Assembly: GCA_002269645.1 (NCBI GenBank)
Contig: NIVC01004883.1
Location: 1-32,443, forward strand
From: Macrostomum lignano
Taxonomy: Eukaryota
Direction of reading: 5' to 3'
Length of the DNA stretch: 32,443 nt
Shown here: positions 2,686 to 32,443 of the stretch, one piece after another
Layout: each line of letters starts with the position of its first letter
Position numbering within the stretch: position 1 is the stretch's first letter
Program-made: the position numbers and the translations under genes
Notes under the pieces: model-generated
Told to the model about the DNA's origin: nothing
What the model saw: the letters and a program-made list of their open reading frames with translations, nothing else
Databases searched by the model: none

Positions 2686-3361
2686 ATGAAAATTATGAGC
2701 CTAAGCCGACTGGACCAGCTGTTGCTGAAGCTCACCGAAGAGGAGGCTCGGGAGCTGATCGCCGATCACTGTTGACCAGGCAGTGCTGCTTCTCCGCCAG
2801 ATTATTGAAGACCCTGACGGTGAGTTAGCGTTGCCTCGCATGAGGCCTTTTTTACACTCTGATCAGCTGGTTCGAGCGGCACACCGTCAAGGAGCGGTTC
2901 GTGGCCTACCACGGCGGCCCGCTGGACAGCCGCTTGAACGGGCCGGAGCCGCCCCCTGGGACCTCAAACGGCCGATCCCTGCCGCGTTCACCGACGCCCA
3001 GTACAGCCTGCCGCTGCCGCACTCGGAGAAGACGCTAGGCTGTCCGCACTGCTTCGGCGTCGGCTACGTCAACTGCCGGCGCTGCCGACGGAAAGGCAAC
3101 GTGTCCTGCCTGGTCTGCCACGGTCACGGCGAGGAGCTGCCAGGTGCACCATGTGCGCCGGCAGAGGCACCGTCCGTGTGTCCGGCCTGCCGCGGCCGAA
3201 TCGGCGTCGAGTGTCCGGAATGCGCCGGCTCCGGCCGGTTGAAACGCTATCGAGTGGTTCAAGTCACGTGGGGAGTGGCCTTCGACTATGTTGTGCTGAA
3301 CGGGAGTGACCTGCCGTCCTACAGGCTTAGCGAGACCGACGGATTTGTTGTTCATCGACAG
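2686..3361 (+). CDS. SSUH2: SSUH2-family protein, exon 1 (DnaJ-like CxxCxGxG zinc-finger repeats); about 5 frameshifting indels in 2770-2955
   Basis: Reading across frames gives LTEEEARELIADHVDQQCCFS...FFYTLISWFER...YHGGPLD...PWDL...F...LPHSEKTLGCPHCFGVG..CRRCRRKG..CLVCHGHG...CPECAGSGRLKRYRVVQVTW, collinear with recalled SSUH2 motifs (AREALLSFVDSKCCYS, WDI, VPHS, repeated CxxCxGxG). Ends at donor CAG|GTGAGC. Start at 2686 or 2695 is uncertain. Confidence 0.8.
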
Positions 3362-3852
3362 GTGAGCCACTGAATTCTTCGCTGAGGACGGAGGGGGCTG
3401 AGGAGCGGAGGGCGGAAGGAGTCTAAGGAGGTGGACAGCGAAGGGCGGAAGGGGGCTGAGGACTGAGGAGCGTGGACAGCGGAGGCGGAAGGGGGCTGGA
3501 GGACTGAGGAGGTGGACAGCGAAGGCGGAAGGGGCTGAGGAGGTGGACAGCGGAGGTGGAACGGGGGCTGAGGAGGTGGACAGCGGAGGTCGGAAGGGGG
3601 CTGAGGAGGTGGACAGCGGAGGTCGGAAGGGGGCTGAGGAGGTGGACAGCGGAGGTCGGAAGGGGGCTGAGGAGGTGGACAGCGGAGGTCGGAACGGGGG
3701 CTGAGGAGGTGGACAGCGGAGGTCGGAACGGGGGCCGGGTCGAGTAAGAGCGCGAGTATGCACAATGCAGAATAAGACACACAATAGCGTGACAACAGCT
3801 TACTCTAACAACGCTACTACACGCCCCAGCTACTTCTTCCCATCAATCCTAG
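3362..3852 (+). other. 491-nt phase-0 GT-AG intron of the SSUH2-like gene
   Basis: GTGAGC donor at 3362 and TTCTTCCCATCAATCCTAG acceptor ending at 3852; splicing joins GFVVHRQ to VGPRV in frame. Confidence 0.75.
3385..3730. repeat. 33-bp G-rich intronic minisatellite CTGAGGAGGTGGACAGCGGAGGTCGGAAGGGGG
   Basis: Period 33 (e.g. 3601 and 3634); about 6 clean copies plus degenerate 5' copies. Confidence 0.9.
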
Positions 3853-6675: not shown

Positions 6676-8535
6676 CTGGTGTGTTCTCCTCTCCCTGGTG
6701 TGTTCTCCTCTCCCTGGTGTGTTCTCCTCTCCCTGGTGTGTTCTCCTCTCCCTGGTGTGTTCTCCTCTCCCTGGTGTGTTCTCCTCTCCCTGGTGTGTTC
6801 TCCTCTCCCTGGTGTGTTCTCCTCTCCCTGGTGTGTTCTCCTCTCCCTGGTGTGTTCTCCTCTCCCTGGTGTGTTCTCCTCTCCCTGGTGTGTTCTCCTC
6901 TCCCTAGTGTGTTCTCCTCTCCCTGGTGTGTTCTCCTCTCCCTGGTGTGTTCTCCTCTCCCTGGTGTGTTCTCCTCTCCCTAGTGTGTTCTCCTCTCCCT
7001 GGTGTGTTCTCCTCTCCCTGGTGTGTTCTCCTCTCCCTGGTGTGTTCTCCTCTCCCTGGTGTGTTCTCCTCTCCCTGATGTGTTCTCCTCTCCCTGGTGT
7101 GTTCTCCTCTCCCTGGTGTGTTCTCCTCTCCCTGGTGTGTTCTCCTCTCCCTGGTGTGTTCTCCTCTCCCTGGTGTGTTCTCCTCTCCCTGGTGTGTTCT
7201 CCTCTCCCTGGTGTGTTCTCCTCTCCCTGGTGTGTTCTCCTCTCCCTAGTGTGTTCTCCTCTCCCTGGTGTGTTCTCCTCTCCCTGGTGTGTTCTCCTCT
7301 CCCTGGTGTGTTCTCCTCTCCCTGGTGTGTTCTCCTCTCCCTGGTGTGTTCTCCTCTCCCTGGTGTGTTCTCCTCTCCCTGGTGTGTTCTCCTCTCCCTG
7401 GTGTGTTCTCCTCTCCCTAGTGTGTTCTCCTCTCCCTAGTGTGTTCTCCTCTCCCTGGTGTGTTCTCCTCTCCCTGGTGTGTTCTCCTCTCCCTGGTGTG
7501 TTCTCCTCTCCCTGGTGTGTTCTCCTCTCCCTGGTGTGTTCTCCTCTCCCTGGTGTGTTCTCCTCTCCCTGGTGTGTTCTCCTCTCCCTGGTGTGTTCTC
7601 CTCTCCCTAGTGTGTTCTCCTCTCCCTGGTGTGTTCTCCTCTCCCTGGTGTGTTCTCCTCTCCCTGGTGTGTTCTCCTCTCCCTGGTGTGTTCTCCTCTC
7701 CCTGGTGTGTTCTCCTCTCCCTGGTGTGTTCTCCTCTCCCTGGTGTGTTCTCCTCTCCCTAGTGTGTTCTCCTCTCCCTGGTGTGTTCTCCTCTCCCTGG
7801 TGTGTTCTCCTCTCCCTGGTGTGTTCTCCTCTCCCTGGTGTGTTCTCCTCTCCCTGGTGTGTTCTCCTCTCCCTGGTGTGTTCTCCTCTCCCTGGTGTGT
7901 TCTCCTCTCCCTGGTGTGTTCTCCTCTCCCTGGTGTGTTCTCCTCTCCCTGGTGTGTTCTCCTCTCCCTGGTGTGTTCTCCTCTCCCTGGTGTGTTCTCC
8001 TCTCCCTGGTGTGTTCTCCTCTCCCTGGTGTGTTCTCCTCTCCCTGGTGTGTTCTCCTCTCCCTGGTGTGTTCTCCTCTCCCTGGTGTGTTCTCCTCTCC
8101 CTGGTGTGTTCTCCTCTCCCTGGTGTGTTCTCCTCTCCCTGGTGTGTTCTCCTCTCCCTGGTGTGTTCTCCTCTCCCTGGTGTGTTCTCCTCTCCCTGGT
8201 GTGTTCTCCTCTCCCTGGTGTGTTCTCCTCTCCCTGGTGTGTTCTCCTCTCCCTGGTGTGTTCTCCTCTCCCTGGTGTGTTCTCCTCTCCCTGGTGTGTT
8301 CTCCTCTCCCTGGTGTGTTCTCCTCTCCCTGGTGTGTTCTCCTCTCCCTGGTGTGTTCTCCTCTCCCTGGTGTGTTCTCCTCTCCCTGGTGTGTTCTCCT
8401 CTCCCTGGTGTGTTCTCCTCTCCCTGGTGTGTTCTCCTCTCCCTGGTGTGTTCTCCTCTCCCTGGTGTGTTCTCCTCTCCCTGGTGTGTTCTCCTCTCCC
8501 CGCTGTGTTCCCCTCTCTCCGCTGTGTTCCCCTCC
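6676..8535. repeat. 19-bp minisatellite CTGGTGTGTTCTCCTCTCC, about 98 copies
   Basis: Near-perfect 19-nt period; explains the 19-aa-periodic ORFs on both strands. Confidence 0.97.
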
Positions 8536-9296
8536 CCCACTGTTCCCCATTCCGCCCTTCAGTATCTATTTCTTGACCTCTCTAGCCGCGAGAGTCTGCT
8601 TATATTCCCGCCTTCTTCCAGTTTATTTTCATTGGATTTCTCCAATGAGAATCAATATTGATTAGAAAATCACAATTCCACACAGATGGACAGCTGCCAG
8701 AGAAGTCGGAGAAGGGCTGACATGCGGGTAATCTTGTTGAGAATCTGATGAGGCAAACTGGCAGCTGTCCAGGATGGGGCCGAGCAGATGCTTTGCTCAT
8801 GTGTGAGAACTTTCAGCCTACTCTCGGCTCGCGATTTTCGAGAAATCCGAGCTCCCGATGGGAGTTTCGGACTCGAACTGGCAAAGCCGGATCCCGTCAC
8901 CTGTCTTCCTCAGCCCCCGCGAATAAGCTTCTTTTTTATCCCAAGTCGTGCTGGCATCCCATTTGTGCCAGAATCTTTCCAACTCAAAGCTCCCCCACCG
9001 TAGGGATTGTGTCTATTTGGGGGACTTTCTTCCCAACTCCCTCGCAGGCGATGGAGTTGAATCCGATCCGATCCGACACCTGGGGGTGTCGCTTCATTTC
9101 TAAGCTTGAGTCGGACTTTCAGATTCATTAATATTGTTGGAGAAGATCTATCACATGGTAAATTGATGCAATAAAAATAAATGACTGATGAGCAAAACAA
9201 GATTCATAGGTAATCGGCATTCAGCTTTATCATTTTGGCGACTATACGTGACTTAAACTCTATTTCAATCACTGGTTTCCATTTCCAAATTTAGTA

Positions 9297-11909: not shown

Positions 11910-13297
11910 CAGATCCCAGATCCAGATCCCAGATCCAGATCCCAGATCCAGATCCCAGATCCAGATCCCAGATCCAGATCCCAGATCCAGATCCCAGATC
12001 CAGATCCCAGATCCAGATCCCAGATCCAGATCCCAGATCCAGATCCCAGATCCAGATCCCAGATCCAGATCCCAGATCCAGATCCCAGATCCAGATCCCA
12101 GATCCAGATCCCAGATCCAGATCCCAGATCCAGATCCCAGATCCAGATCCCAGATCCAGATCCCAGATCCAGATCCCAGATCCAGATCCCAGATCCAGAT
12201 CCCAGATCCAGATCCCAGATCCAGATCCCAGATCCAGATCCCAGATCCAGATCCCAGATCCAGATCCCAGATCCAGATCCCAGATCCAGATCCCAGATCC
12301 AGATCCCAGATCCAGATCCCAGATCCAGATCCCAGATCCAGATCCCAGATCCAGATCCCAGATCCAGATCCCAGATCCAGATCCCAGATCCAGATCCCAG
12401 ATCCAGATCCCAGATCCAGATCCCAGATCCAGATCCCAGATCCAGATCCCAGATCCAGATCCCAGATCCAGATCCCAGATCCAGATCCCAGATCCAGATC
12501 CCAGATCCAGATCCCAGATCCAGATCCCAGATCCAGATCCCAGATCCAGATCCCAGATCCAGATCCCAGATCCAGATCCCAGATCCAGATCCCAGATCCA
12601 GATCCCAGATCCAGATCCCAGATCCAGATCCCAGATCCAGATCCCAGATCCAGATCCCAGATCCAGATCCCAGATCCAGATCCCAGATCCAGATCCCAGA
12701 TCCAGATCCCAGATCCAGATCCCAGATCCAGATCCCAGATCCAGATCCCAGATCCAGATCCCAGATCCAGATCCCAGATCCAGATCCCAGATCCAGATCC
12801 CAGATCCAGATCCCAGATCCAGATCCCAGATCCAGATCCCAGATCCAGATCCCAGATCCAGATCCCAGATCCAGATCCCAGATCCAGATCCCAGATCCAG
12901 ATCCCAGATCCAGATCCCAGATCCAGATCCCAGATCCAGATCCCAGATCCAGATCCCAGATCCAGATCCCAGATCCAGATCCCAGATCCAGATCCCAGAT
13001 CCAGATCCCAGATCCAGATCCCAGATCCAGATCCCAGATCCAGATCCCAGATCCAGATCCCAGATCCAGATCCCAGATCCAGATCCCAGATCCAGATCCC
13101 AGATCCAGATCCCAGATCCAGATCCCAGATCCAGATCCCAGATCCAGATCCCAGATCCAGATCCCAGATCCAGATCCCAGATCCAGATCCCAGATCCAGA
13201 TCCCAGATCCAGATCCCAGATCCAGATCCCAGATCCAGATCCCAGATCCAGATCCCAGATCCAGATCCCAGATCCAGATCCCAGATCCAGATCCAGA
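11910..13297. repeat. Perfect 13-bp tandem repeat AGATCCCAGATCC, about 106 copies
   Basis: Alternating 7+6 subunits; I saw no substitution or indel over about 1.39 kb. Confidence 0.98.
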
Positions 13298-14109
13298 TTT
13301 CCTGTAAAATTAATTGTCTCAGTCTGAATGAATAATTCAATAGCAATCTTTCTCTCCGAGTCGTCCCATCCCCAGTGCGCATCGGAGACAACTCAGCTGC
13401 TACTCAGCTTTCCTCCCTAGATTTCCCTAGTGCCAGGAGGACCTTTAATGCGATAATGCTTTGGCCCGGGGTGTTGTGTTGCTTGACAAAACCAGTCAAG
13501 AAGCTCTTCATTCTGGATTCTCTCCCCCCACTGCCCCTCTCTGCCTCTCCTGCGCTCAGAGGTAACATGAGAACAGCAGATAGAGCGAAAATTAATAAGC
13601 TCAATATCCAATATAGTGGGGGAACAGCACGGATAGCTGTAGAGCAGAGCTTTCTGAGCTCAAAGTCAACAACAGAATCCCGCTGGCGCATTCTGTCTCT
13701 CTTCTCTCTCCTTGTCTGTCTCCGCATGTTTTTTCGTTTTTTGAGTTTATAAAATGAAATTGGAGATTGGACTCGTTTAAATTTGATGCAGAACGAACTC
13801 ATTGGAATCTGAGGAAGATTTTGCTTTGCCACGTTCCCCAACTTTCTGGCGCCAGAAGCAGCAGAGCAAGGATAACAGGATAACAAGGACCGAAGCTAAT
13901 TCACTTTTTCCCCGCTTGCTCCGGGCCACTCGCATCCCTGACTTTCGTTTATTCCCTGCCTGATCCCCCCTTCTCTGCTGCTCTCGTAACGTTCCGCCAA
14001 CAGTCTTCGGTCATGTCCTTCTCAATACTCTTCCTATCATAACTTGCCAAATTAAATTTGTCATGCCAAAACCTGGCTGAACTCAGTAAAATGAGTGGGA
14101 GAAAATGCT

Positions 14110-15143: not shown

Positions 15144-17647
15144 TATATACTGGCACCGTGATCCCACCGCTGTCACCACCCTATCTATATACTGGCACCG
15201 TGATCCCACCGCTGTCACCACCCTATCTATATACTGGCACCGTGATCCCACCGCTGTCACCACCCTATCAATATACTGGCACCGTGATCCCACCGCTGTC
15301 ACCACCCTATCAATATACTGGCACCGTGATCCCACCGCTGTCACCACCCTATCAATATACTGGCACCGTGATCCCACCGCTGTCACCACCCTATCAATAT
15401 ACTGGCACCGTGATCCCACCGCTGTCACCACCCTATCAATATACTGGCACCGTGATCCCACCGCTGTCACCACCCTATCAATATACTGGCACCGTGATCC
15501 CACCGCTGTCACCACCCTATCAATATACTGGCACCGTGATCCCACCGCTGTCACCACCCTATCAATATACTGGCACCGTGATCCCACCGCTGTCACCACC
15601 CTATCAATATACTGGCACCGTGATCCCACCGCTGTCACCACCCTATCAATATACTGGCACCGTGATCCCACCGCTGTCACCACCCTATCAATATACTGGC
15701 ACCGTGATCCCACCGCTGTCACCATCCTATCAATATACTGGCACCGTGATCCCACCGCTGTCACCACCCTATCAATATACTGGCACCGTGATCCCACCGC
15801 TGTCACCACCCTATCAATATACTGGCACCGTGATCCCACCGCTGTCACCACCCTATCAATATACTGGCACCGTGATCCCACCGCTGTCACCACCCTATCA
15901 ATATACTGGCACCGTGATCCCACCGCTGTCACCACCCTATCAATATACTGGCACCGTGATCCCACCGCTGTCACCACCCTATCAATATACTGGCACCGTG
16001 ATCCCACCGCTGTCACCACCCTATCAATATACTGGCACCGTGATCCCACCGCTGTCACCACCCTATCAATATACTGGCACCGTGATCCCACCGCTGTCAC
16101 CACCCTATCAATATACTGGCACCGTGATCCCACCGCTGTCACCACCCTATCAATATACTGGCACCGTGATCCCACCGCTGTCACCACCCTATCAATATAC
16201 TGGCACCGTGATCCCACCGCTGTCACCACCCTATCAATATACTGGCACCGTGATCCCACCGCTGTCACCACCCTATCAATATACTGGCACCGTGATCCCA
16301 CCGCTGTCACCACCCTATCAATATACTGGCACCGTGATCCCACCGCTGTCACCATCCTATCAATATACTGGCACCGTGATCCCACCGCTGTCACCACCCT
16401 ATCAATATACTGGCACCGTGATCCCACCGCTGTCACCACCCTATCAATATACTGGCACCGTGATCCCACCGCTGTCACCATCCTATCAATATACTGGCAC
16501 CGTGATCCCACCGCTGTCACCATCCTATCAATATACTGGCACCGTGATCCCACCGCTGTCACCACCCTATCAATATACTGGCACCGTGATCCCACCGCTG
16601 TCACCACCCTATCAATATACTGGCACCGTGATCCCACCGCTGTCACCATCCTATCAATATACTGACACCGTGATCCCACCGCTGTCACCATCCTATCAAT
16701 ATACTGGCACCGTGATCCCACCGCTGTCACCATCCTATCAATATACTGGCACCGTGATCCCACCGCTGTCACCACCCTATCAATATACTGGCACCGTGAT
16801 CCCACCGCTGTCACCATCCTATCAATATACTGACACCGTGATCCCACCGCTGTCACCATCCTATCAATATACTGGCACCGTGATCCCACCGCTGTCACCA
16901 TCCTATCAATATACTGGCACCGTGATCCCACCGCTGTCACCACCCTATCAATATACTGGCACCGTGATCCCACCGCTGTCACCATCCTATCAATATACTG
17001 ACACCGTGATCCCACCGCTGTCACCATCCTATCAATATACTGGCACCGTGATCCCACCGCTGTCACCATCCTATCAATATACTGGCACCGTGATCCCACC
17101 GCTGTCACCACCCTATCAATATACTGGCACCGTGATCCCACCGCTGTCACCATCCTATCAATATACTGGCACCGTGATCCCACCGCTGTCACCACCCTAT
17201 CAATATACTGGCACCGTGATCCCACCGCTGTCACCATCCTATCAATATACTGACACCGTGATCCCACCGCTGTCACCACCCTATCAATATACTGGCACCG
17301 TGATCCCACCGCTGTCACCACCCTATCAATATACTGGCACCGTGATCCCACCGCTGTCACCACCCTATCTATATACTGGCACCGTGATCCCACCGCTGTC
17401 ACCACCCTATCAATATACTGGCACCGTGATCCCACCGCTGTCACCATCCTATCAATATACTGGCACCGTGATCTAACCGCTGTCACCACCCTATCTATAT
17501 ACTGGCACCGTGATCCCACCGCTGTCACCACCCTATCAATATACTGGCACCGTGATCCCACCGCTGTCACCATCCTATCAATATACTGACACCGTGATCC
17601 CACCGCTGTCACCATCCTATCAATATACTGGCACCGTGATCCCACCG
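15144..17647. repeat. 42-bp minisatellite ATATACTGGCACCGTGATCCCACCGCTGTCACCACCCTATCA, about 59 copies
   Basis: Period 42 (14-aa ORF repeats), with three recurrent point variants. Confidence 0.97.
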
Positions 17648-20029
17648 CCCGCCACAGTAAATTATCTTATACATGTAACGTACAAAAAAAAACTTAGTTT
17701 GATTGAAAGCGTAGCAATCGAAACTTTTCCAGAAATTCTTGTTTACAATGCCGATATTTTTTTCCTTAAATGCACATCTTTCTACTGCTCAGTAGTGTAT
17801 CATGAAAGTTTGTTTTCTCTTTACACTCCCGAGTCTTTAGGACAAACTGTACTGAACTTATTGGTAAATGAAGTACAATGTTCTGTTGTTCTGAGCTGGT
17901 AGTTTCGATATAAAAGCACACTATAAAAAACAAATCGTTACAAATATAACAATTTAAGTATGAAAATCTAAGAGGCCAAAGCTATTATTGTTGTCTACTT
18001 TTACAATTCCTTCAAGTCTGCTTTTTTGGGGACTACTTTAAAAAAAATCAGCCAGCTGAGCGCAGATAACAGCTCAGCGACTGAGAAATATCAAATTATT
18101 CGCCTTTGCCTTTCCTCGCCAAGCTTTTATTTGATTCTCGCCTGCTTGCCCGAGACGGCGCATCTGGCTCTCATTGTGCGACTTGCGCCCCTCTGCAACC
18201 CGCCCTTGGGATCCGGTTTCCGCTGCTGCCATTCTCCACCTCTTTCCCCCGTTATCCCAAGCAGAATCCCTAGGAGCCCCCCCCGCGTGTGCGCTCGTTG
18301 AAACTTCTCAGATCTCAGGCTCAGCTTGTTAATGCGAGGCGTAAAGAGGGAAAGCGATGGGAAGAAAGCTGGCGAGAAATTTCCCGAGGACGCAAATTTC
18401 CCAGTGCTACCCTCTCCGATATACTGCAGAGTTGAGAAAGAGTAGGATTGACTTTGTGGGATGCTATCCCTCTTTTATCCTGTCGGCTGCTGTCTCTCTG
18501 CCGTTTCCCTTCACATCTGCTTGGCACTTTCCTAATTCTTTGTGTGTCATCACCTAAAATTACTCTGCCTGTTTGTCCGCTTTTAAGAAGTTCCAGCTAA
18601 GAACTTTAAATTTGTGGGCAAGGGGATTATAATCTTATTTGGTTGGGGGGGGGGGCTGGCACACTCTCGCTAGATTATCCTGCCTGCAATACAATATTAT
18701 AAAAGTGCAGAGATGCCCTGCTGTGTGTGTGTTTTCGTTGATGACGCTCCAATGAAGGGATGCATTCCCATTACGCTTGACTGCCTCTGCGCCCTTCGCC
18801 TTGCTTCCATTTTTCCCTCTCCCTCTCTCTCTCTGGCAAAAGAAGACTGAAGCAGTATAGCTGCCCTCGCAGGCCTCGCGTTTTCGCTCAGCCCAAAGTA
18901 GCCGGTCGAGCGATTAATTTGAGCTTCGAATCCACAGCGCGGACAAACGCATCGATTGGTTTAGCAAGACATTAAATCTGCACTGCGTTCAAACTTCTAA
19001 AAGGGTCAAAATAAAGGTTAGCAGAGGTTGGCAGTGTTGCAATATTTTTATATCGAAATTTACTTTTCCAAGAATTTCAATAAATTATCAAATCAATTTC
19101 TTTCTACGACCAATGTAACAATATCGAATGATCTTATTTGAAACTGGATATCCCATTTTGTTTGAGCACACTGGCCAGGTGACCGGATGAGGGACTAGCT
19201 GACAAAGATTCATTGCCTTGATTAGCCCCGTGCCATGGCGCCCTGGGAGAGGTGAAGAACGGTACAAGATTTCCTGGAAAGTCGCGCACTTCCTTTGTAA
19301 GCCCTTTGTGAAGCTCTAATGCGAGCCCAGTCATCGTTGAGTTTCTATTTTGACATTGAGATCGGATGAGCTGTAGCTTAGATTTGCATCCGTTGATGCA
19401 CAACACGGACAATGTCCCGAGAAGCAAGGGCTTATCTGCTCTTGGATTTGCAGATCAAACAGCCTCCTGCAGGTAAGCAAGTCAAAGGGCTCACTTGCAA
19501 TGGAAATACTCGACAGACATTCGGACAGACACACTCAGAATTCTCCAACTGTCTATAGGGGAAAAATGAAAATTCCCTTTCCTACGAAAATCGAGCGGTC
19601 ACGCCATCGCTTCTCTTTTCCTCAAGGTCTTCTGGCCCGGCTTTCCTGTGTGTTTCAGAGGGGGGTTGAGGTGACCGACCCTCTCTATATTCTATACTGT
19701 GGGGGATCTTGCGAGGTCAATTATAATTTTACTTACCTGGCACATCTGGTCAGACTGCAGCGCGTGCTACCTGAGACCCTCTCTTCTCGTCTCCTTTACA
19801 AGATCGCGATAATGATGGCTCGAATGAAGACCATTAGGGGCATCGTGTCCAGCGTTAATTTTTTTGCTCGCTGCTTCCTTGTAACTTGAATTTATTATTC
19901 ACTCTTAATGCTTTATAGCTCACGTTAGCACTCAATAGGGCAGCCCATGCCATCAAACTCGCACTACCTTGTGCTCAGACGATTGAATGTGACTTCCATG
20001 CAGGTGACTCCGAACAAATCCGAGACTGT

Positions 20030-26570: not shown

Positions 26571-26941
26571 CACGTGCAATTCTTGGTGCGTCAATACTGG
26601 CTTCTAATGGTGTCATTGAATTGGTGCCCACAGCCTACACACATAGCTCGTACACAGTTCAAGCACAACAGCTCGCTAATCCACATAGTGTATACAGATG
26701 TTTATGCTCAAACGATGCAATGGTTTATGCCTAACGCTGCGAGGGTTCGGGCTGCGAGAGGGGAGTGATTGATAATTTAGAGCATTAGCACAACAAGCGT
26801 TAACGCAATTACACAACAATGCAATTAATGGCCGGTTGCCATTGTTTAGTTCAGATTTGGTTCCGCCCGGGTTTTAATATGTTCCACATCTCGACCTCGG
26901 CACCAATAGTTGAAGTCTTTGTTGCTGTGCCAGCCGCCTGC

Positions 26942-27904
26942 TCAATGCTTGAGCGTGTGCCACTTAGACACCTGCTGTCGCGGCCTGTTCATCATTTCTG
27001 TCCAGTGCTTGGACTCCTCGGTGCCGGACCTGGTGCCCAGCCGGATCTTGCCGATCGTGTCCGATCCGATGAAGTCTTTGTCCTTGACCACCAGCTCGAG
27101 CTGGTATTCGTGTATCTTATCCGGGCTGACCGTGAAGTTGAACGACTCGTCCCACTGCGGATTCAAGTTCTTGTAGATGACGGTGCCTTTCTTCTTGTCG
27201 CACTCTTTATTAGTCTTGCTGTGAATCAGCTTCACTACGCAATAGGGATCGGAGGTTCGGCCCAGATCCATAGCCTTTAGGTCGCGAGCTCGAATCGTCA
27301 CCAGGGTGAGCTGGCTGCTCTGCGGGTTGTAGCCGAGAGAGACCATCACGTCGCCTACGTAGCCTCGAGTTTTCTTATTTGGCTGCAGTTGGCGCCACAG
27401 GTTATAGGAGCGCTTCTTCTTGCTCTCATCGTACAGATACATCAGCGGGAACTGGATGTCTCCGATAGAGTCGTCCCGGCTGAACCTGTCGTAGTCGTAC
27501 ACCTGGATGAACAGCGTCCGATCCAGCAGTCTCTCGCCTGGGAAGTCCTCGAATACGAACACTTCGTTCCACTTGGGATTGAGTTTGCGCATTTTTATTT
27601 TAGTTTTCACCTTGTTGCCCTTGTCAGGCAAGATGCTGATCTTACAGTACGGATCTGACGTGCCCATTGGAAAGTCCATAGCGGGCAGCTTCTGGGCCTG
27701 GCAGATTTTTATTGTCAGATGTCGGTCGTTCCAATCGTAGCTGATAACAAAGTTCAAACGACCGAGGTTCTGCTCGGAGCCCTCTTCGAACACTTCGCCG
27801 TTGGTCTCGTGCTCCGGCCGCTTGTCCGCTCCGCTGTTCATCCCGGAGGCCGTGGCGCCCATCGCCTCGGCGCTTTTGGCCATCAAGCTGAACAGGCTGG
27901 TCTC

Positions 27905-27962
<58 letters not shown>

Positions 27963-28201
27963 CTTGGCGACCTGTGCTGTTGGTACTGCTGCTGGTAGTG
28001 CTGCTGCCTTTGCTGGTGGCTGTCCGGGAATCGCCTCGGCGACGCCCTGGCCGCACCGGCCCCGTTGCTGTAGCGCGACGCCGACGCTCCGGCGGAGGAC
28101 GCCGAGACGCCCGGCTTGCTGTCACCCGTCAGCGTTGACACGAGAAAGTCGGCGATGCCCTTGCCGCCCAGGCTGTTTGCGATGCTACCGGGGAGGTTCA
28201 T
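26942..28201 (-). CDS. SYT7: Synaptotagmin-7-like tandem C2A-C2B protein, 419 aa, single exon, polyQ N-terminus, no transmembrane segment in the ORF
   Basis: C2A NLGRLNFVISY...AMDFPMGTSDPY...LPDK..K..TK...KLNPKWNEVFVFEDFP...QVYDYDRFSRDDSIG; C2B ARDLKAMDLGRTSDPY...KKK...NLNPQWDESF...KDKD; C-terminus HWTEMMNRPRQQVSKWHTLK. These match recalled Syt7 signatures ([37 protein letters not shown]). ORF is intact from ATG to TGA. Confidence 0.9.
27905..27961 (-). repeat. Coding (CAG)17-CAA-CAG tract, 19 Gln
   Basis: Counted directly: on + it is CTG TTG (CTG)17. Confidence 0.95.
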
Positions 28202-28356
28202 AGCGACTGCTTCTAGCTTGGGAAGGCTAGTGTCTTGATATTCTAGCTCTGGGACTCCCGAGTAGCGCTCGTGCTGCTCGGTTGACCCTCGCGCTAAGCT
28301 TTATTCCCGCAGCTCAAGCCGGTTGAGCGGCTGAGTAGAGGGAATTTACTCTGCTC

Positions 28357-28395
28357 TCATTGGCTGTTCGACATGAGCAGCTGCAATCATGTGAC
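28357..28395 (-). promoter_or_regulatory. Candidate proximal promoter of the Syt7-like gene: CCAAT box plus E-box/M-box
   Basis: AGCCAATGA on - (core 28359-28363), CAGCTG at 28378-28383 and TCATGTGAC at 28387-28395, about 160-195 nt upstream of the ATG. Confidence 0.35.
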
Positions 28396-29551
28396 CGGTG
28401 TTTTATTTTTCCCTGGACACTTCAGCAATAAATCCCATTGAATAGTAAGCCAATGCTGGACCAGATCTAGATCATTCCCTATAGCTATTGCAGCCCAACT
28501 CTCAATCCCAAATGGCTAGGGCTTCTCCTTTGTAAAAATGCCACTAGAGCAAGCAGCTCAGCTCCGGCCGATGAGATGGAGCGCAGTGTTTCTTTCAGGA
28601 AAAAAATCAGACTAGCAAGCGTAAAAAGTGCAGCACACCGCGGGAAGAAAATCCCATAAGTTTTTTTACTTTGATATTCGATTTTTTTCGAAATGCCCCC
28701 CCACAAGATTTTTGCTGCATGCACGAGGGGAACAGACGGACGCTGAGGCGAATTTGCGCAGTGTCCAGTCAGTGTGCCCTTCAATGACAGAAAGAAGCAG
28801 AGGTAGCGAGGGCACGGGGAGAGACAGGCAGCCTGGCCAGCATACAATAGATACAATAGAGCTGCTTCTATCCTGCGCTGAGAGGCCCCGGCTAAAGAGA
28901 GGATTAGAGGCCGCTGAACCCCCCCCCCCTGCCTTGTTATTCGCCCGCCGTCTGGTGCTGCGCCTGAAGCGCCACGGGCTGCCTTTTCGACTCTTTCCGC
29001 TACACAGAGAAGCTCAGATCTGTCGAGCAAGGCTTTGAGACAGAGAAAAAAAACTAGTTGAGTCGAAATGCGCGGGCACACCCTTTTCCAGCCTCCTCCT
29101 TATTTCTGCTTCTGAGCTAGCAGATTCAGTCAGCAGGATCCCCTCGCCGCAGGGCGCACCTGCTCGCCCGACCTTATGAGCCGGCTCTGCAATCAGCAAC
29201 GGCGGCCAGGTGCTGTAACTCGGCCTGAAACTTGAGAGCGGAAGGCTCTTGATTCGCGAAGAATGATGCTAATTATCTCTGCGCACCTGCTGTCATGATG
29301 AAGCTTATTTTGATGAAACGAACAGTTCCAGACGAATACGCGACTGACAGGAGTGGCAAAACTTCAACGAGCGAACTGGATGTTTGACCGACATAGTTGA
29401 GGGAATTCTCGCGATGGCTTGTAGAACAATTTCTATATCAGGCGATGGCGAGCTGAGAGAAAGGAGTCAGGGTGAACGAATTGATAAAAAAATTTTGCGA
29501 GGGTGACAGATAAAGGCAGGGACGAAGTAAAAACGGCAGAGATGTTGAGAG

Positions 29552-30110
29552 GAAGGGAGACAGGGGAGAGGGAGACAGACAGGGGAGAGGGAGATAGGGG
29601 AGAAGGAGACAGGGAAGAGGGATATAGGGGAGAGTTAGACGGGGGAGAGGGAGATAAGGAAGAGGGAGATAGGGGAGAGTGAGACAGGGAGAGCGAGACA
29701 GGGGAGAGGGAGATAGGGGAGAGGGAGATAGGGGAGAGGGAAACAGGGAGAGCGAGACAGGGGAGAGTGAGACAGGGAGAGGGAGATAGGGGAGAGGGAG
29801 ATAGGGGAGAGGGAGACAGGGAGAGGGAGATAGGGGAGAGTGAGACAGGGAGAGGGAGATAGGGGAGAGGGATATAGGGGAGAGGGAGACAGGGAGAGGG
29901 AGATAGGGGAGAGGGATATAGGGGAGAGGGAGACAGGGAGAGGGAGATAGGGAGAAGGAGACAGGGAGAGCGAGACAGGGGAGAGGGGGGAGATGGGGGG
30001 AGGGAGATAGGGAGAGGGAGACAGGGAGAGGGAGATAGGGGAGAGGGAGATAGGAGAGAGGGAGATAGGGAGAAGGAGCTAGAAATGGACAGAGAGAAGT
30101 CAGAGAGCCT
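29552..30110. repeat. Purine-rich degenerate 14-15-bp repeat GGGAGAGGGAGA(T/C)AG
   Basis: Recurring GGGGAGAGGGAGATA / GGGAGAGGGAGACA. Confidence 0.9.
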
Positions 30111-30585
30111 ATGTAAACACAGACAGGCGAGCATTCTTAAATAGAATAAGTATATAAGGGATATCTTATAGCATCGGAAAGGAGCGCATGACTAATCGGG
30201 GTAGAGCCGGATAAACACAGAAACAAGAGAATATGGAGAAGCGCAACCGGAGAGTCGAGCGAATAAATTCTGGCTCTGCTGTAGCCGCAATATTGGGAAT
30301 CTTAGCTGTCGATCAATCTTTGTTAGAGAGACATTTTTGTAAGGGCCTGTGCCAACTGGAACACCAGCGAACTTGACACAGGCGGGGTGGCCTCAAACGC
30401 AGAGAGGAAATACTTATCTTGCCAGCCGAAATCCCCCGATCCCAGCGGCTTAGCGACCGTCTGCTAGCCGAAAATTGCCAGTCAAGCAAAGTTTTGGGCA
30501 ATTATCCGACGTCTTGTCGCTCATGCATCCCTCCATGATTGGTTGTGTCTGGGGTTGTCCCCGGTTCTGCCGAGATTAAGGGCAG

Positions 30586-30601
30586 AGTGAGAGAGAGAGG
30601 C

Positions 30602-30632
<31 letters not shown>

Positions 30633-30935
30633 AAGAGATAGAGAGAGAGAGAGAGATTGAAAGGCAGAGAGATTGAAAGGCAGAGAGAGTGAAAGGCAGA
30701 GAGATTGAAAGGCAGAGAGATTGAAAGGCAGAGAGAGTGAAAGGCAGAGAGAGTGAAAGGCAGAGAGAGTGAAAGGCAGAAAGAGTGAAAGGCAGAGAGA
30801 TTGAAAGGCAGAGAGAGTGAAAGGCAGAGAGAGTGAAAGGCAGAGAGAGCGAAAGGCAGAAAGAGTGAAAGGCAGAGAGATTGAAAGGCAGAGAGAGTGA
30901 AAGGCAGAGAGGGTGAAAGGCAGAGAGAGTGAAGG
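30586..30935. repeat. (GA)n microsatellite grading into a 16-bp repeat GAAAGGCAGAGAGA(G/T)T
   Basis: GA run at about 30586-30655, then about 17 copies of the 16-mer. Confidence 0.92.
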
Positions 30936-31661
30936 ACAAAGAGATTGAAGACAGTGGAAGACAGTGAACTTGCACTCATTTTTAACAATAACAAGAGCTG
31001 TAATTCATGAAGGCAACATCTGAAAAAGAATACTTTCTTGTTGAATAAAAGTTGCTATTGGCGTCAATGCAGTGCCATACATGGCGTGAGTCCTTGATGC
31101 TGTAGCTACAGCGCGCGTGAACAAGTGGCTCCCTTTTAATAAACTGTCTTCTCTCCTTTTCGGCTCCCGAGATGATGGATGAAGTGCCCAGCTCCAGTAT
31201 CCTAGTAATATGATTAGCGCCGCATTATCTGATCGCGCTTTGCAGCTACTTACCGAATTTTTATATAAAATGCGGCCTCAGATTTTTTGCTAAGTGCCCC
31301 AACTCTTCCGTGCTTCCAATAGCTCGACTATCCCCTATCCAGGCCAGACAAAGAGGCTTGCAATGCAGCGCAGTGCAAGGAGAAATTGATTGATCGATTG
31401 AAAATTCGCCTGGATGGGCACTCTTTGCCGGCCTCTTTTTGTGTTGCCCCAGCCTGTTTGCGACAGGCGGATAGCTCGTAGTGGTGAATCGATATCCTCT
31501 GCTCTATGCTTCCAGTGAAAGCGCTGATACAAAACCAGTTGTTGGCTTGAAAACTGCCCCGATCACTTTGTCAGTTCAGCTCTTGTCTTGACAAGATACA
31601 GAATAGAATCTACAGTTGTGTGACTTGCGAGTTTATATACAAAATAATCGGATACACATGA

Positions 31662-32000
31662 CAACCAACCACTCCATGCCGCCAGCACCCCATTAAAAAA
31701 CCACCCCACGCCGCAAGCACCCCATAAAACAACCACCCATGCCGCCAGACCCATGAAAAAACCACCCCACGCCGCAAGCACCCCATAAAACAACCACCCC
31801 ATGCCGCCAGCACCCATGAAAAAACCACCCCACGCCGCAAGCACCCCATAAAACAAACACCCCATGCCGCCAGCACCCATGAAAAACCACCCCATGCCGC
31901 AAGCACCCATAAAACAACCACCCCACGCCGCAAGCACCACATAAAACAACTACCCCACGCCGCAAACACCCCATAAAACAACTAGCCACGTCTCCAGCAC
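31662..32000. repeat. Degenerate ~31-32-bp repeat CACCCCA(C/T)GCCGC(A/C)AGCACCCATAAAACAAC
   Basis: About 10 copies with many small indels; lies just upstream of the GluN1-like acceptor. Confidence 0.85.
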
Positions 32001-32143
32001 CCTAAAAAACCAACCCCACCCACACAGCCAAATCCTGAAAACGACCGCACCACGCGGCCAACACTCGAAGAATCAACCACTCCACTTAATCTGCCTACAA
32101 CCGAAGCCAATCAATCAATCTCAACAACTCTCCATCCCAACAG

Positions 32144-32443
32144 AGCGTTCGCAACGAGAAACTAGACGCGTTTATCTGCGGACAGCGCCCGCCTAAACTA
32201 CGAGGCCGCGGCTGATGAAAAATGCGAGCTGATGACCGCCGGCGACGTTTTTTGGCCGGACGGCTACGGCCTGGCGATGCCTCAGGACAGCCGTGGATTG
32301 CCGAGATCTCGCAACTGGTGCTGAACTTTCACGAGAGCGGCTTCATGGAGAAGTTGCGACACCAGATGGATCTTGGTCAATGAAACTAACTGCAAGAAGG
32401 CCAACTCTTCGCCGGCCACTCTGGGCCTCACAAACATGGCCGG
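32144..32443 (+). CDS. GRIN1: NMDA receptor GluN1-like exon (S2 ligand-binding lobe to pre-M4), interrupted by 3-5 single-base indels; runs off the window
   Basis: After acceptor CTCTCCATCCCAACAG (ends 32143), the frame-corrected reading is SVRNEKLDAFIWDSARLNYEAAADEKCELMTAGDVFGRTGYGLAMPQDSPWIAEISQLVLNFHESGFMEKLDTRWILVNETNCKKANSSPATLGLTNMAG. This matches recalled GluN1/Nmdar1 motifs AFIWDS, GELFGRSGYG, SPW, FHESGFMEKLD and TLGLKNMAG. Confidence 0.85.

Follow-up and report, generated by a model that had tools for sequence, protein, structure and literature searches.

The window analysed here, all 32,443 nucleotides of the complete contig NIVC01004883.1 of the flatworm Macrostomum lignano (assembly GCA_002269645.1, Mlig_3_7), carries on its minus strand a single-exon gene for a 419-residue protein of the synaptotagmin-7 (Syt7) type. 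The gene is a real, constrained Syt7 paralog, and probably an anchor-less one, in an intron-poor and duplication-rich flatworm genome. We favour, with moderate confidence, the interpretation that it is a functional, lineage-specific paralog of the anchored gene Mlig004812, that it arose by an old partial duplication, and that its product is an anchor-less, cytosolic and diffusible Ca2+ sensor. The gene call recorded on this contig has as its product exactly this open reading frame (ORF), beginning at Met 1. An initial interpretation made from the nucleotides without database searches (the sequence-only reading) had described an ORF free of introns, preceded by an in-frame TAA 33 codons upstream with no ATG in between. 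Both descriptions hold: the 419 codons run uninterrupted from the ATG, and the TAA lies at positions 28303-28301.

C2 domains, N-terminal region and anchored paralog

Pfam recognized two C2 stretches in the ORF (E=1.6e-50) and no domain other than C2. When the PDB was searched with phmmer, the best match was the C2AB module of rat Syt7 (6ank, 261 bits, residues 140-418), followed by Syt1 (206 bits) and Syt3 (171 bits). The Syt17 C2A match was weak (63 bits), and the two domains did not group with Doc2/rabphilin (57-67 against 261 bits per match, the former for each domain; 29-32% identity in Foldseek), these being similarity scores and not a tree. In a database of 5.8 billion proteins, nearly all top hits with a source name were called synaptotagmin-7. 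The predicted structure gives the same picture. An AlphaFold model built with 45 homologs has a predicted local distance difference test score (pLDDT) above 90 for both C2A (148-271) and C2B (284-416), a Foldseek search with this model returned 6ank at the top (E=4e-34), and the modelled C2B superposes on the Syt7 C2B structure (3n5a) with a template modelling score of 0.96 and a root mean square deviation of 0.8 Å.

The residues expected to bind Ca2+ are retained. Nine of the ten ligand positions (Table 1) fall in invariant columns of a 45-sequence Syt7 alignment, and the tenth column holds D or E; 48 family-invariant positions are kept in the window protein. Three further C2A residues, F177, F240 and R242, are also conserved, and their equivalents in Syt7 C2A are reported, in the 6ANK study, to be loop residues that matter for tight membrane binding. 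The sequence-only reading had assigned both C2 domains to the Syt7 type, with five candidate Asp ligands each, and had set them apart from Doc2/rabphilin. Both assignments are supported by the match to 6ank at 261 bits with all ten ligands, and the second also by the protein search and by Foldseek. Judged by its sequence, the protein thus appears to be a Syt7-lineage C2AB protein without the features that anchor canonical Syt7.

Two small loop changes were observed alongside these conserved features. In Ca2+-binding loop 1 of C2A (27673-27696, minus strand) one residue is inserted, giving DFPMGTSD where rat Syt7 has DF-SGTSD, with DFP[ML]GTSD across both M. lignano copies. In loop 3 of C2B (27058-27084, minus strand) one residue is deleted, with DKDF[IL]GS[DE]T common to both M. 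lignano copies and DKDKLSRND in rat Syt7. These shared indels mark a Macrostomum-specific Syt7 subclade.

The proteins most similar to the window protein are M. lignano entries named 'Synaptotagmin-7', with 63-65% identity. The check for a parent with a transmembrane helix elsewhere in the genome, proposed by the sequence-only reading, led to Mlig004812, a gene with one intron. This paralog (Mlig004812g1, PAA83559.1, P0121; UniProt A0A1I8IHD6 and A0A1I8F4E4) lies in the same assembly on a different contig, and its product is 66% identical to the window protein over C2AB. Its protein start, (LYSQLII)MEQTQAVLVVVLCAFVAVLFILVLSFYTPLCDAGLGCCFKRRRRR, has the classical order of a short tip in the lumen followed by a transmembrane helix (hydropathy 3.49), then a Cys cluster and a basic stretch. 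In the gene, which spans 1.8 kb (L002 10001-11816), one exon holds the transmembrane helix, linker and beginning of C2A; its single intron (349 bp, phase 0, L002 10769-11117) follows SDPYCK, and the remainder forms the second exon.

The two M. lignano genes share the C2A loop-1 insertion DFP[ML]GTSD, an HSKT insertion in C2B, the C-terminus WHTLKH and the linker motif LVSTLT..KP, and neither has the ancestral C2B intron. Mlig004812 differs in having the transmembrane helix, the CDAGLGCC cluster, the basic stretch, a Pro/Ser-rich linker that is longer and includes an optional spliced segment, and the C2A intron, whereas only the window gene has a polyglutamine (polyQ) tract. The first ~135 residues of the paralog, which comprise the luminal tip, the transmembrane helix, the Cys cluster and the proximal linker, have no counterpart in the window protein. 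No near-identical homeolog and no ortholog from another Macrostomum was found in the protein search, in which nothing was closer than 65%, and the exact sequence was absent from the clustered collection.

Residues 1-145, ahead of C2A, are dominated by Q (29), S (19), A (16) and G (14), which together make up 54%. The highest 19-residue Kyte-Doolittle mean in this region is 0.84, compared with 3.49 for the paralog transmembrane helix, and it holds 0 Cys, compared with the CDAGLGCC cluster of the paralog. Because there is no Cys, a Rab-binding Zn finger is ruled out in the N-terminus. The AlphaFold model has pLDDT below 50 at residues 1-64 and 105-132, indicative of predicted disorder, with a polyQ helix between them. 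The canonical Syt7 transmembrane anchor and juxtamembrane Cys cluster are both absent from the ORF, and the scan for an anchor reached as far as the contig end, 4.2 kb upstream.

Comparison with the paralog clarified where this region came from. Collinear homology starts at residues 20-30 with the LVSTLT block, runs through an A/S/G-rich stretch, is broken by the Q-rich/CAG tract, and resumes before C2A. The nucleotide differences within the LVSTLT block, read directly between the window and the paralog, are mostly synonymous; in both genes, therefore, it is translated sequence under constraint. The CAG/polyQ tract has no counterpart in the paralog and is therefore interpreted as a lineage-specific expansion. 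Given the collinear homology with the paralog linker from LVSTLT onward, the N-terminus is not new: it corresponds to the distal portion of the ancestral linker between transmembrane helix and C2A, enlarged by a polyQ expansion. The sequence-only reading had described a G/S/A/Q-rich N-terminus of ~140 residues with no transmembrane helix and no Cys, which is accurate over residues 1-145. Its further claim that this N-terminus is new has to be abandoned in view of the linker homology from residue ~20 and the CAG/polyQ expansion.

The paralog linker is itself variable. In the Mlig004812 isoform P0123, ...RRRRRSTA is joined to PPAAAPASA and ~105 codons of exon 1 (L002 10001-10768) are skipped, using an internal donor GCA/GTTACT and an acceptor GGTTCAG/CC (here and below, slashes mark junctions). 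LVSTLTSETKP, the motif kept by the window gene, lies inside this optional segment. The copies also differ in base composition: the window gene has a G+C content at third codon positions (GC3) of 0.795, Mlig004812 one of 0.593. Local context, biased gene conversion or the level of expression may account for this large shift between two copies in one genome.

Selection, origin and the start of the protein

The window gene is under purifying selection and is therefore no dead copy. Comparison with Mlig004812 over 275 aligned C2AB codons gave dN=0.27 and dS~1.95 (nonsynonymous and synonymous divergence), and the ratio dN/dS~0.14 is an upper bound because dS is saturated. Tajima relative-rate tests with 14 outgroup Syt7 proteins showed no excess of unique changes in the window copy, whose pace is equal to or slightly below that of the paralog. 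The check on dN/dS suggested by the sequence-only reading thus pointed to constraint with no rate acceleration. Base composition follows the reading frame: in-frame GC3 is 0.6-0.94 over all 419 codons and ~0.41 on both flanks, with a rise to 0.82 exactly at the ATG and a return to 0.41 after the stop. With its intact frame at saturated synonymous divergence from the paralog, and with this frame-specific GC3, the ORF lies far outside what chance would give.

The annotation provides further evidence. Mlig_3_7 gene models are transcript-based, with StringTie/TACO assemblies, TBONE evidence on trans-splicing and poly(A) sites, and TransDecoder ORFs (PMC5730564). In this annotation the paralog product is extended upstream of its Met as a 5'-partial protein (LYSQLII-M...), while the window product starts at Met 1. 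The form of the window product, a complete 419-residue protein in a transcript-based annotation, suggests that the transcript is expressed and carries the upstream stop in its 5' part.

Intron positions bear on how the copy arose. A phase-1 intron in the Asp codon of C2B S/DPYVK has the same position and phase in Drosophila simulans Syt7 (L003 6174-7515) and in Helobdella robusta syt7d (L004), and since it is common to both, it is regarded as an ancestral protostome intron, one that neither M. lignano copy has. With this ancestral intron missing in both and only one intron in the paralog, intron poverty is considered to predate the duplication. Genome-wide, the annotation of M. lignano lists 187,627 cis-splice regions for 71,499 genes, or ~2.6 per gene (PMC8629364). 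The 349-bp intron of the paralog was considered as an ancestral intron and rejected: its position is not used in D. simulans or Helobdella Syt7, and its absence from the window gene could be a loss there or its presence a gain in the paralog. The intronless state is largely inherited from an intron-poor ancestor and, alone, is not indicative of retroposition. The step taken in the sequence-only reading, from an intronless gene to a retrocopy, does not stand, given a paralog with one intron and the lack of the ancestral C2B intron in both copies.

A 5'-truncated processed retrocopy of an anchored Syt7-like mRNA, which happened to insert close to a promoter and was subsequently taken up as a gene, would differ from our interpretation in origin only, and we regard it as possible but on the doubtful side. 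It would account for the missing 5' ~135 codons, as incomplete reverse transcription predicts, for the position of the gene on a different contig from the paralog, isolated among satellites, and for the retention of the optional linker segment, so that the long isoform could have been the source. The one intron of the paralog is also absent exactly at K187/I188, which is weakly informative with a one-intron parent and either polarity, loss or gain, open to it. However, that intron is not shared with fly or leech and could be a gain after duplication, the absence of the ancestral C2B intron from both copies makes intron loss a lineage trait, and a partial duplication at the DNA level fits the data equally well. 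A search of the flanks found no poly(A) remnant downstream of the stop and no target-site duplication or direct repeat bracketing the gene, in agreement with the sequence-only reading; at dS~2 such marks are expected to have decayed. What survives of the proposal of a 5'-truncated retrocopy or intron-lost paralog is the absence of both the first ~135 paralog residues and the single intron, while retroposition itself is neither shown nor needed.

The gene could also encode a conventional anchored Syt7 whose transmembrane/Cys exon lies in an assembly gap or past the end of the contig and joins an acceptor within, or close to, the 5' portion of the ORF. In that case the ATG at 28201 would be an internal codon, or would serve only a minor, alternative isoform without a transmembrane helix, of the kind made by arthropod Syt7 genes. 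We consider this unlikely, and several searches bear on it. Matches of the paralog transmembrane/Cys N-terminus to the whole window were at chance level only (tblastn). No relic of transmembrane coding sequence was seen when 1.2 kb of upstream DNA was compared with paralog exon 1 and its 5' flank (blastn, tblastx), and a hydropathy scan of all three minus-strand frames over 28202-32443 revealed no credible transmembrane exon. Hydrophobic frames at 30.6-32.0 kb (minus) are satellite-derived. A weak hydrophobic segment at 28596-28652 (GIFFPRCAALFTLASLIFFLK) was considered as a transmembrane exon and rejected, having no Met, an internal Arg and no homology.

What keeps a distant anchor exon under consideration is that only 4.2 kb of upstream DNA is available on a contig that is 42% minisatellite, that the sequence offers candidate CAG acceptors both at 28207 and inside the N-terminal region, that arthropod Syt7 forms with and without the helix are alternative first exons of one gene (PMC2823689), and that the paralog linker is itself alternatively spliced. 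Yet in the paralog the transmembrane helix and linker occupy one exon, so that no intron is expected between them. The transcript-based annotation gives the complete 419-residue product, neither longer nor 5'-partial, and the coding GC3 signal begins at the ATG. The acceptors near the ATG are weak, with poor polypyrimidine tracts and no fit to the YTNCAG motif, and no transmembrane-like exon lies within the 4.2 kb.

That translation begins within the ORF, at M107, M114 or M121, following trans-splicing or transcription initiation inside it, is quite improbable. Such translation would yield a bare C2AB protein of ~300 residues, like the nematode protein SNT-3, and leave the Q-rich head untranslated. 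Such a start would agree with an acceptor-like sequence found by direct reading immediately before M107, cctgttcag/CTTGATGGCC, with the ~30-39% of M. lignano genes that are trans-spliced to a spliced leader (PMC5730564, PMC8629364), and with the patchiness of the proximal homology to the paralog, but GC3 is 0.82-0.94 across residues 1-106, the conserved LVSTLT..KP block differs mostly at synonymous sites, and the annotated product begins at M1. Neither the M. lignano spliced leader nor its 3' 15-mer was found in the window, as expected for a leader added in trans.

That the ORF is an unexpressed or decaying duplicate, a pseudogene still open by luck, is highly improbable: the gene is isolated on a satellite-rich 32-kb contig and protein collections hold no identical or near-identical protein, but 419 codons are intact despite saturated dS, dN/dS is ~0.14 with no surplus of unique substitutions over the anchored paralog, the ten ligands and 48 family-invariant positions are kept, the codon-position GC structure is strong, and the gene model is present in a transcript-based annotation.

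Several points weigh against the interpretation of the gene as a stand-alone, anchor-less paralog. C2A loop 1 and C2B loop 3 differ from rat Syt7 by the one-residue indels described above. No ortholog from another Macrostomum was found with which to gauge conservation of the start codon, and no near-identical homeolog was seen even though M. lignano is a hidden polyploid. The contig stops 4.2 kb upstream of the ATG, in a stretch that runs into satellites, and an anchor exon farther upstream or in an assembly gap is possible. Weak CAG acceptors lie just before the ATG (28207; exon start 28206) and within the N-terminal region. For the structure of the transcript, the form of the annotated product is the only guide, and Ca2+ binding, solubility and role are predictions made from the protein sequence.

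The surrounding locus

The gene occupies a unique island from approximately 26.55 to 29.5 kb, and its features are listed in Table 1. Minisatellite arrays make up ~42% of the contig, with at least 15 different arrays between 744 and 32019 (e.g. 6676-8538, 11910-13298 and 15145-17648). Their periods range from 5 to 96 nt and their copy numbers reach 128, and several have 97-99% unit identity. All long spurious ORFs of the window are generated by these arrays.

Table 1. Positions of the Syt7-like gene, its parts and its flanking elements in the window.
Feature	Position	Strand	Remarks
Single-exon coding sequence, Syt7-like paralog	26942..28201	minus	419 codons + stop, ATG start, uninterrupted
C2A domain, residues 148-271	27389..27760	minus	ligands D176, D183, D236, D238, D244
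C2B domain, residues 284-416	26954..27352	minus	ligands D312, D318, D374, D376, D381
N-terminal region, residues 1-145	27767..28201	minus	no Cys, no hydrophobic segment, in-frame GC3 0.82-0.94
LVSTLTGDSKP block, residues 20-30	28112..28144	minus	homologous to paralog linker LVSTLTSETKP
Pure CAG tract, Q81-Q99	27905..27961	minus	within wider Q/H/Y-rich stretch, residues 62-99
Codon boundary K187/I188 (SDPYCK/IS)	27640..27641	minus	continuous here; site of the paralog's only intron
In-frame TAA	28301..28303	minus	33 sense codons, no Met, between TAA and ATG at 28201
ATTAAA, candidate poly(A) signal	26873..26878	minus	64 nt past stop codon
Upstream DNA, ATG to contig end, 4.2 kb	28202..32443	minus	unique to ~29.5 kb, then three minisatellite arrays

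Upstream of the gene, a CCAAT-box-like sequence, GCCAATGA, was read by eye ~165 nt before the ATG (28290-28370, minus), with an AATAAA (TATA-like) element ~55 nt downstream of it. This layout would be consistent with the gene having its own promoter immediately 5' of the ORF.

Elsewhere in the window, a 196-residue ORF at 2783-3373 (plus strand) contains a CxxCxGxG-like, Cys-rich stretch (CPHCFGVGYVNCRRCRRKGNVSCLVCHGHG...). Its Pfam matches are below threshold (BSD2_CRD, 18.4 bits, and zf-AtTam37, 18.8 bits; cut-off 27), and the ORF could belong, as an exon, to a DnaJ-CR/SSUH2-like gene. A 33-nt repeat array follows this ORF at 3404-3735.

Anchor-less synaptotagmins and implications for the family

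Synaptotagmin variants without a transmembrane domain are 'usually included' in animal repertoires, either as separate genes or through alternative first exons, and D. melanogaster Syt7 has such variants (PMC2823689, Craxton). Of 123 proteins examined, 120 being the best Syt7 matches and three being additional members of the M. lignano cluster, 44 had no hydrophobic segment; many of these 44 are complete RefSeq isoforms whose alternative N-terminal exons are conserved. In Caenorhabditis elegans, SNT-3 is encoded by its own gene, has no transmembrane helix, binds Ca2+ and the plasma membrane, and acts as a slower secondary sensor that drives delayed release (PMC7883739). The sequence-only reading had equated soluble double-C2 sensors with the Doc2/rabphilin lineage, which proved too narrow in view of SNT-3, the fly Syt7 variants and the 44 of 123 proteins without a helix.

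SNT-3 is the nearest precedent in function. Like the window gene as interpreted here, it is a stand-alone paralog of an anchored synaptotagmin, without a transmembrane helix and with canonical acidic ligands in both C2 domains. It differs in belonging to the Syt1 lineage and in having an N-terminus of 11 residues, whereas the window protein is Syt7-type, has a disordered Q-rich head of ~145 residues and is known from sequence alone. A separate C2AB gene of this kind fits the ORF, the 4.2 kb of upstream DNA, at the end of which the contig stops, and the complete 419-residue product.

The arthropod isoforms are closer in subfamily: they too are Syt7 proteins with C2AB and no transmembrane helix. 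They arise, however, from alternative first exons of one multi-exon gene, while the window form is apparently a separate gene. The helix-less N-terminal exon of insect and crustacean Syt7 was observed to be conserved, with the pattern M(F/L)(E/D)G(L/F)KNN.ISKL.(L/V)S(R/K)F(L/I)SQS(L/I)AQLE (seen in P0073, P0075, P0088, P0091, P0098, P0099, P0108, P0116 and P0021-23) and a second type, MWAAMTRSIEILVAFFEYY...; this conservation suggests a possible targeting motif for anchor-less Syt7 isoforms. Homology of the window N-terminus (SLGGKGIADFLVSTL) to the arthropod exon was considered and rejected, as it scored no better than 4000 shuffles with a hidden Markov model of that exon. The paralog N-terminus also scored no better than 4000 shuffles with the same model.

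Doc2 and rabphilin-3A, soluble tandem-C2 proteins that translocate to membranes on a Ca2+ rise, provide the working analogy that the sequence-only reading proposed for the window protein. They belong to another C2AB lineage, and the window protein has no rabphilin Zn finger and only C2 domains in Pfam, a search not aimed at the short Munc13-interacting (MID) motif of Doc2. A Doc2-like role would be inference by analogy only. Mammalian Syt17 (B/K protein) is, like the window protein, a synaptotagmin family member with no transmembrane helix, and it is attached to membranes via an N-terminal Cys cluster. It is reported as non-Ca2+-binding (as cited in PMC7883739). The window protein differs from it in keeping all ten ligands and in having no N-terminal Cys.

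By the interpretation of the gene as an anchor-less paralog, an old duplication, for which dS is now saturated, would have kept the distal linker and the C2A-C2B module, and the first ~135 residues, with the luminal tip, the transmembrane helix, the palmitoylatable Cys cluster and the proximal linker, would not have been kept. The CAG/polyQ expansion would have arisen later in the retained linker. Translation from the ATG at 28201 would produce a cytosolic protein with a disordered, Q/S/A/G-rich head of ~145 residues and a Ca2+-competent, Syt7-type C2AB module. Such a protein would be soluble at rest. On a rise in Ca2+, the five-Asp loops of C2A and C2B would bind Ca2+ and insert into acidic membranes containing phosphatidylserine or phosphatidylinositol 4,5-bisphosphate. 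The protein would then be a diffusible, translocating secondary sensor, tethered neither to vesicles nor to the plasma membrane, in the manner of SNT-3, Doc2 and the helix-less arthropod Syt7 isoforms. Solubility, Ca2+-dependent translocation and a physiological role are predictions of this interpretation.

A more specific proposal is put forward only tentatively: the gene may encode a stand-alone, constrained cytosolic sensor of the Syt7 type (high-affinity class) whose linker has turned into a polyQ head, making it an independent counterpart of SNT-3 in the Syt7 lineage, and targeting by Q-rich self-association or condensates could replace the lipid anchor. That the Q-rich head adds self-association or partner binding is speculation.

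The significance of the gene is limited by the fact that synaptotagmins without a transmembrane helix are common and that the gene is already in a public annotation. Nor are duplication and intron absence unusual in M. lignano, since its genome is duplication-rich and intron-poor. If the interpretation is true, the window gene would represent a second, independent instance, after nematode SNT-3, of a synaptotagmin with canonical ligands made diffusible by duplication, in this case in the Syt7 and not the Syt1 lineage. As M. lignano is competent for transgenesis, anchored and anchor-less Syt7 could be compared in one animal, which would bear on the part that tethering plays in slow or asynchronous release and in lysosomal exocytosis.

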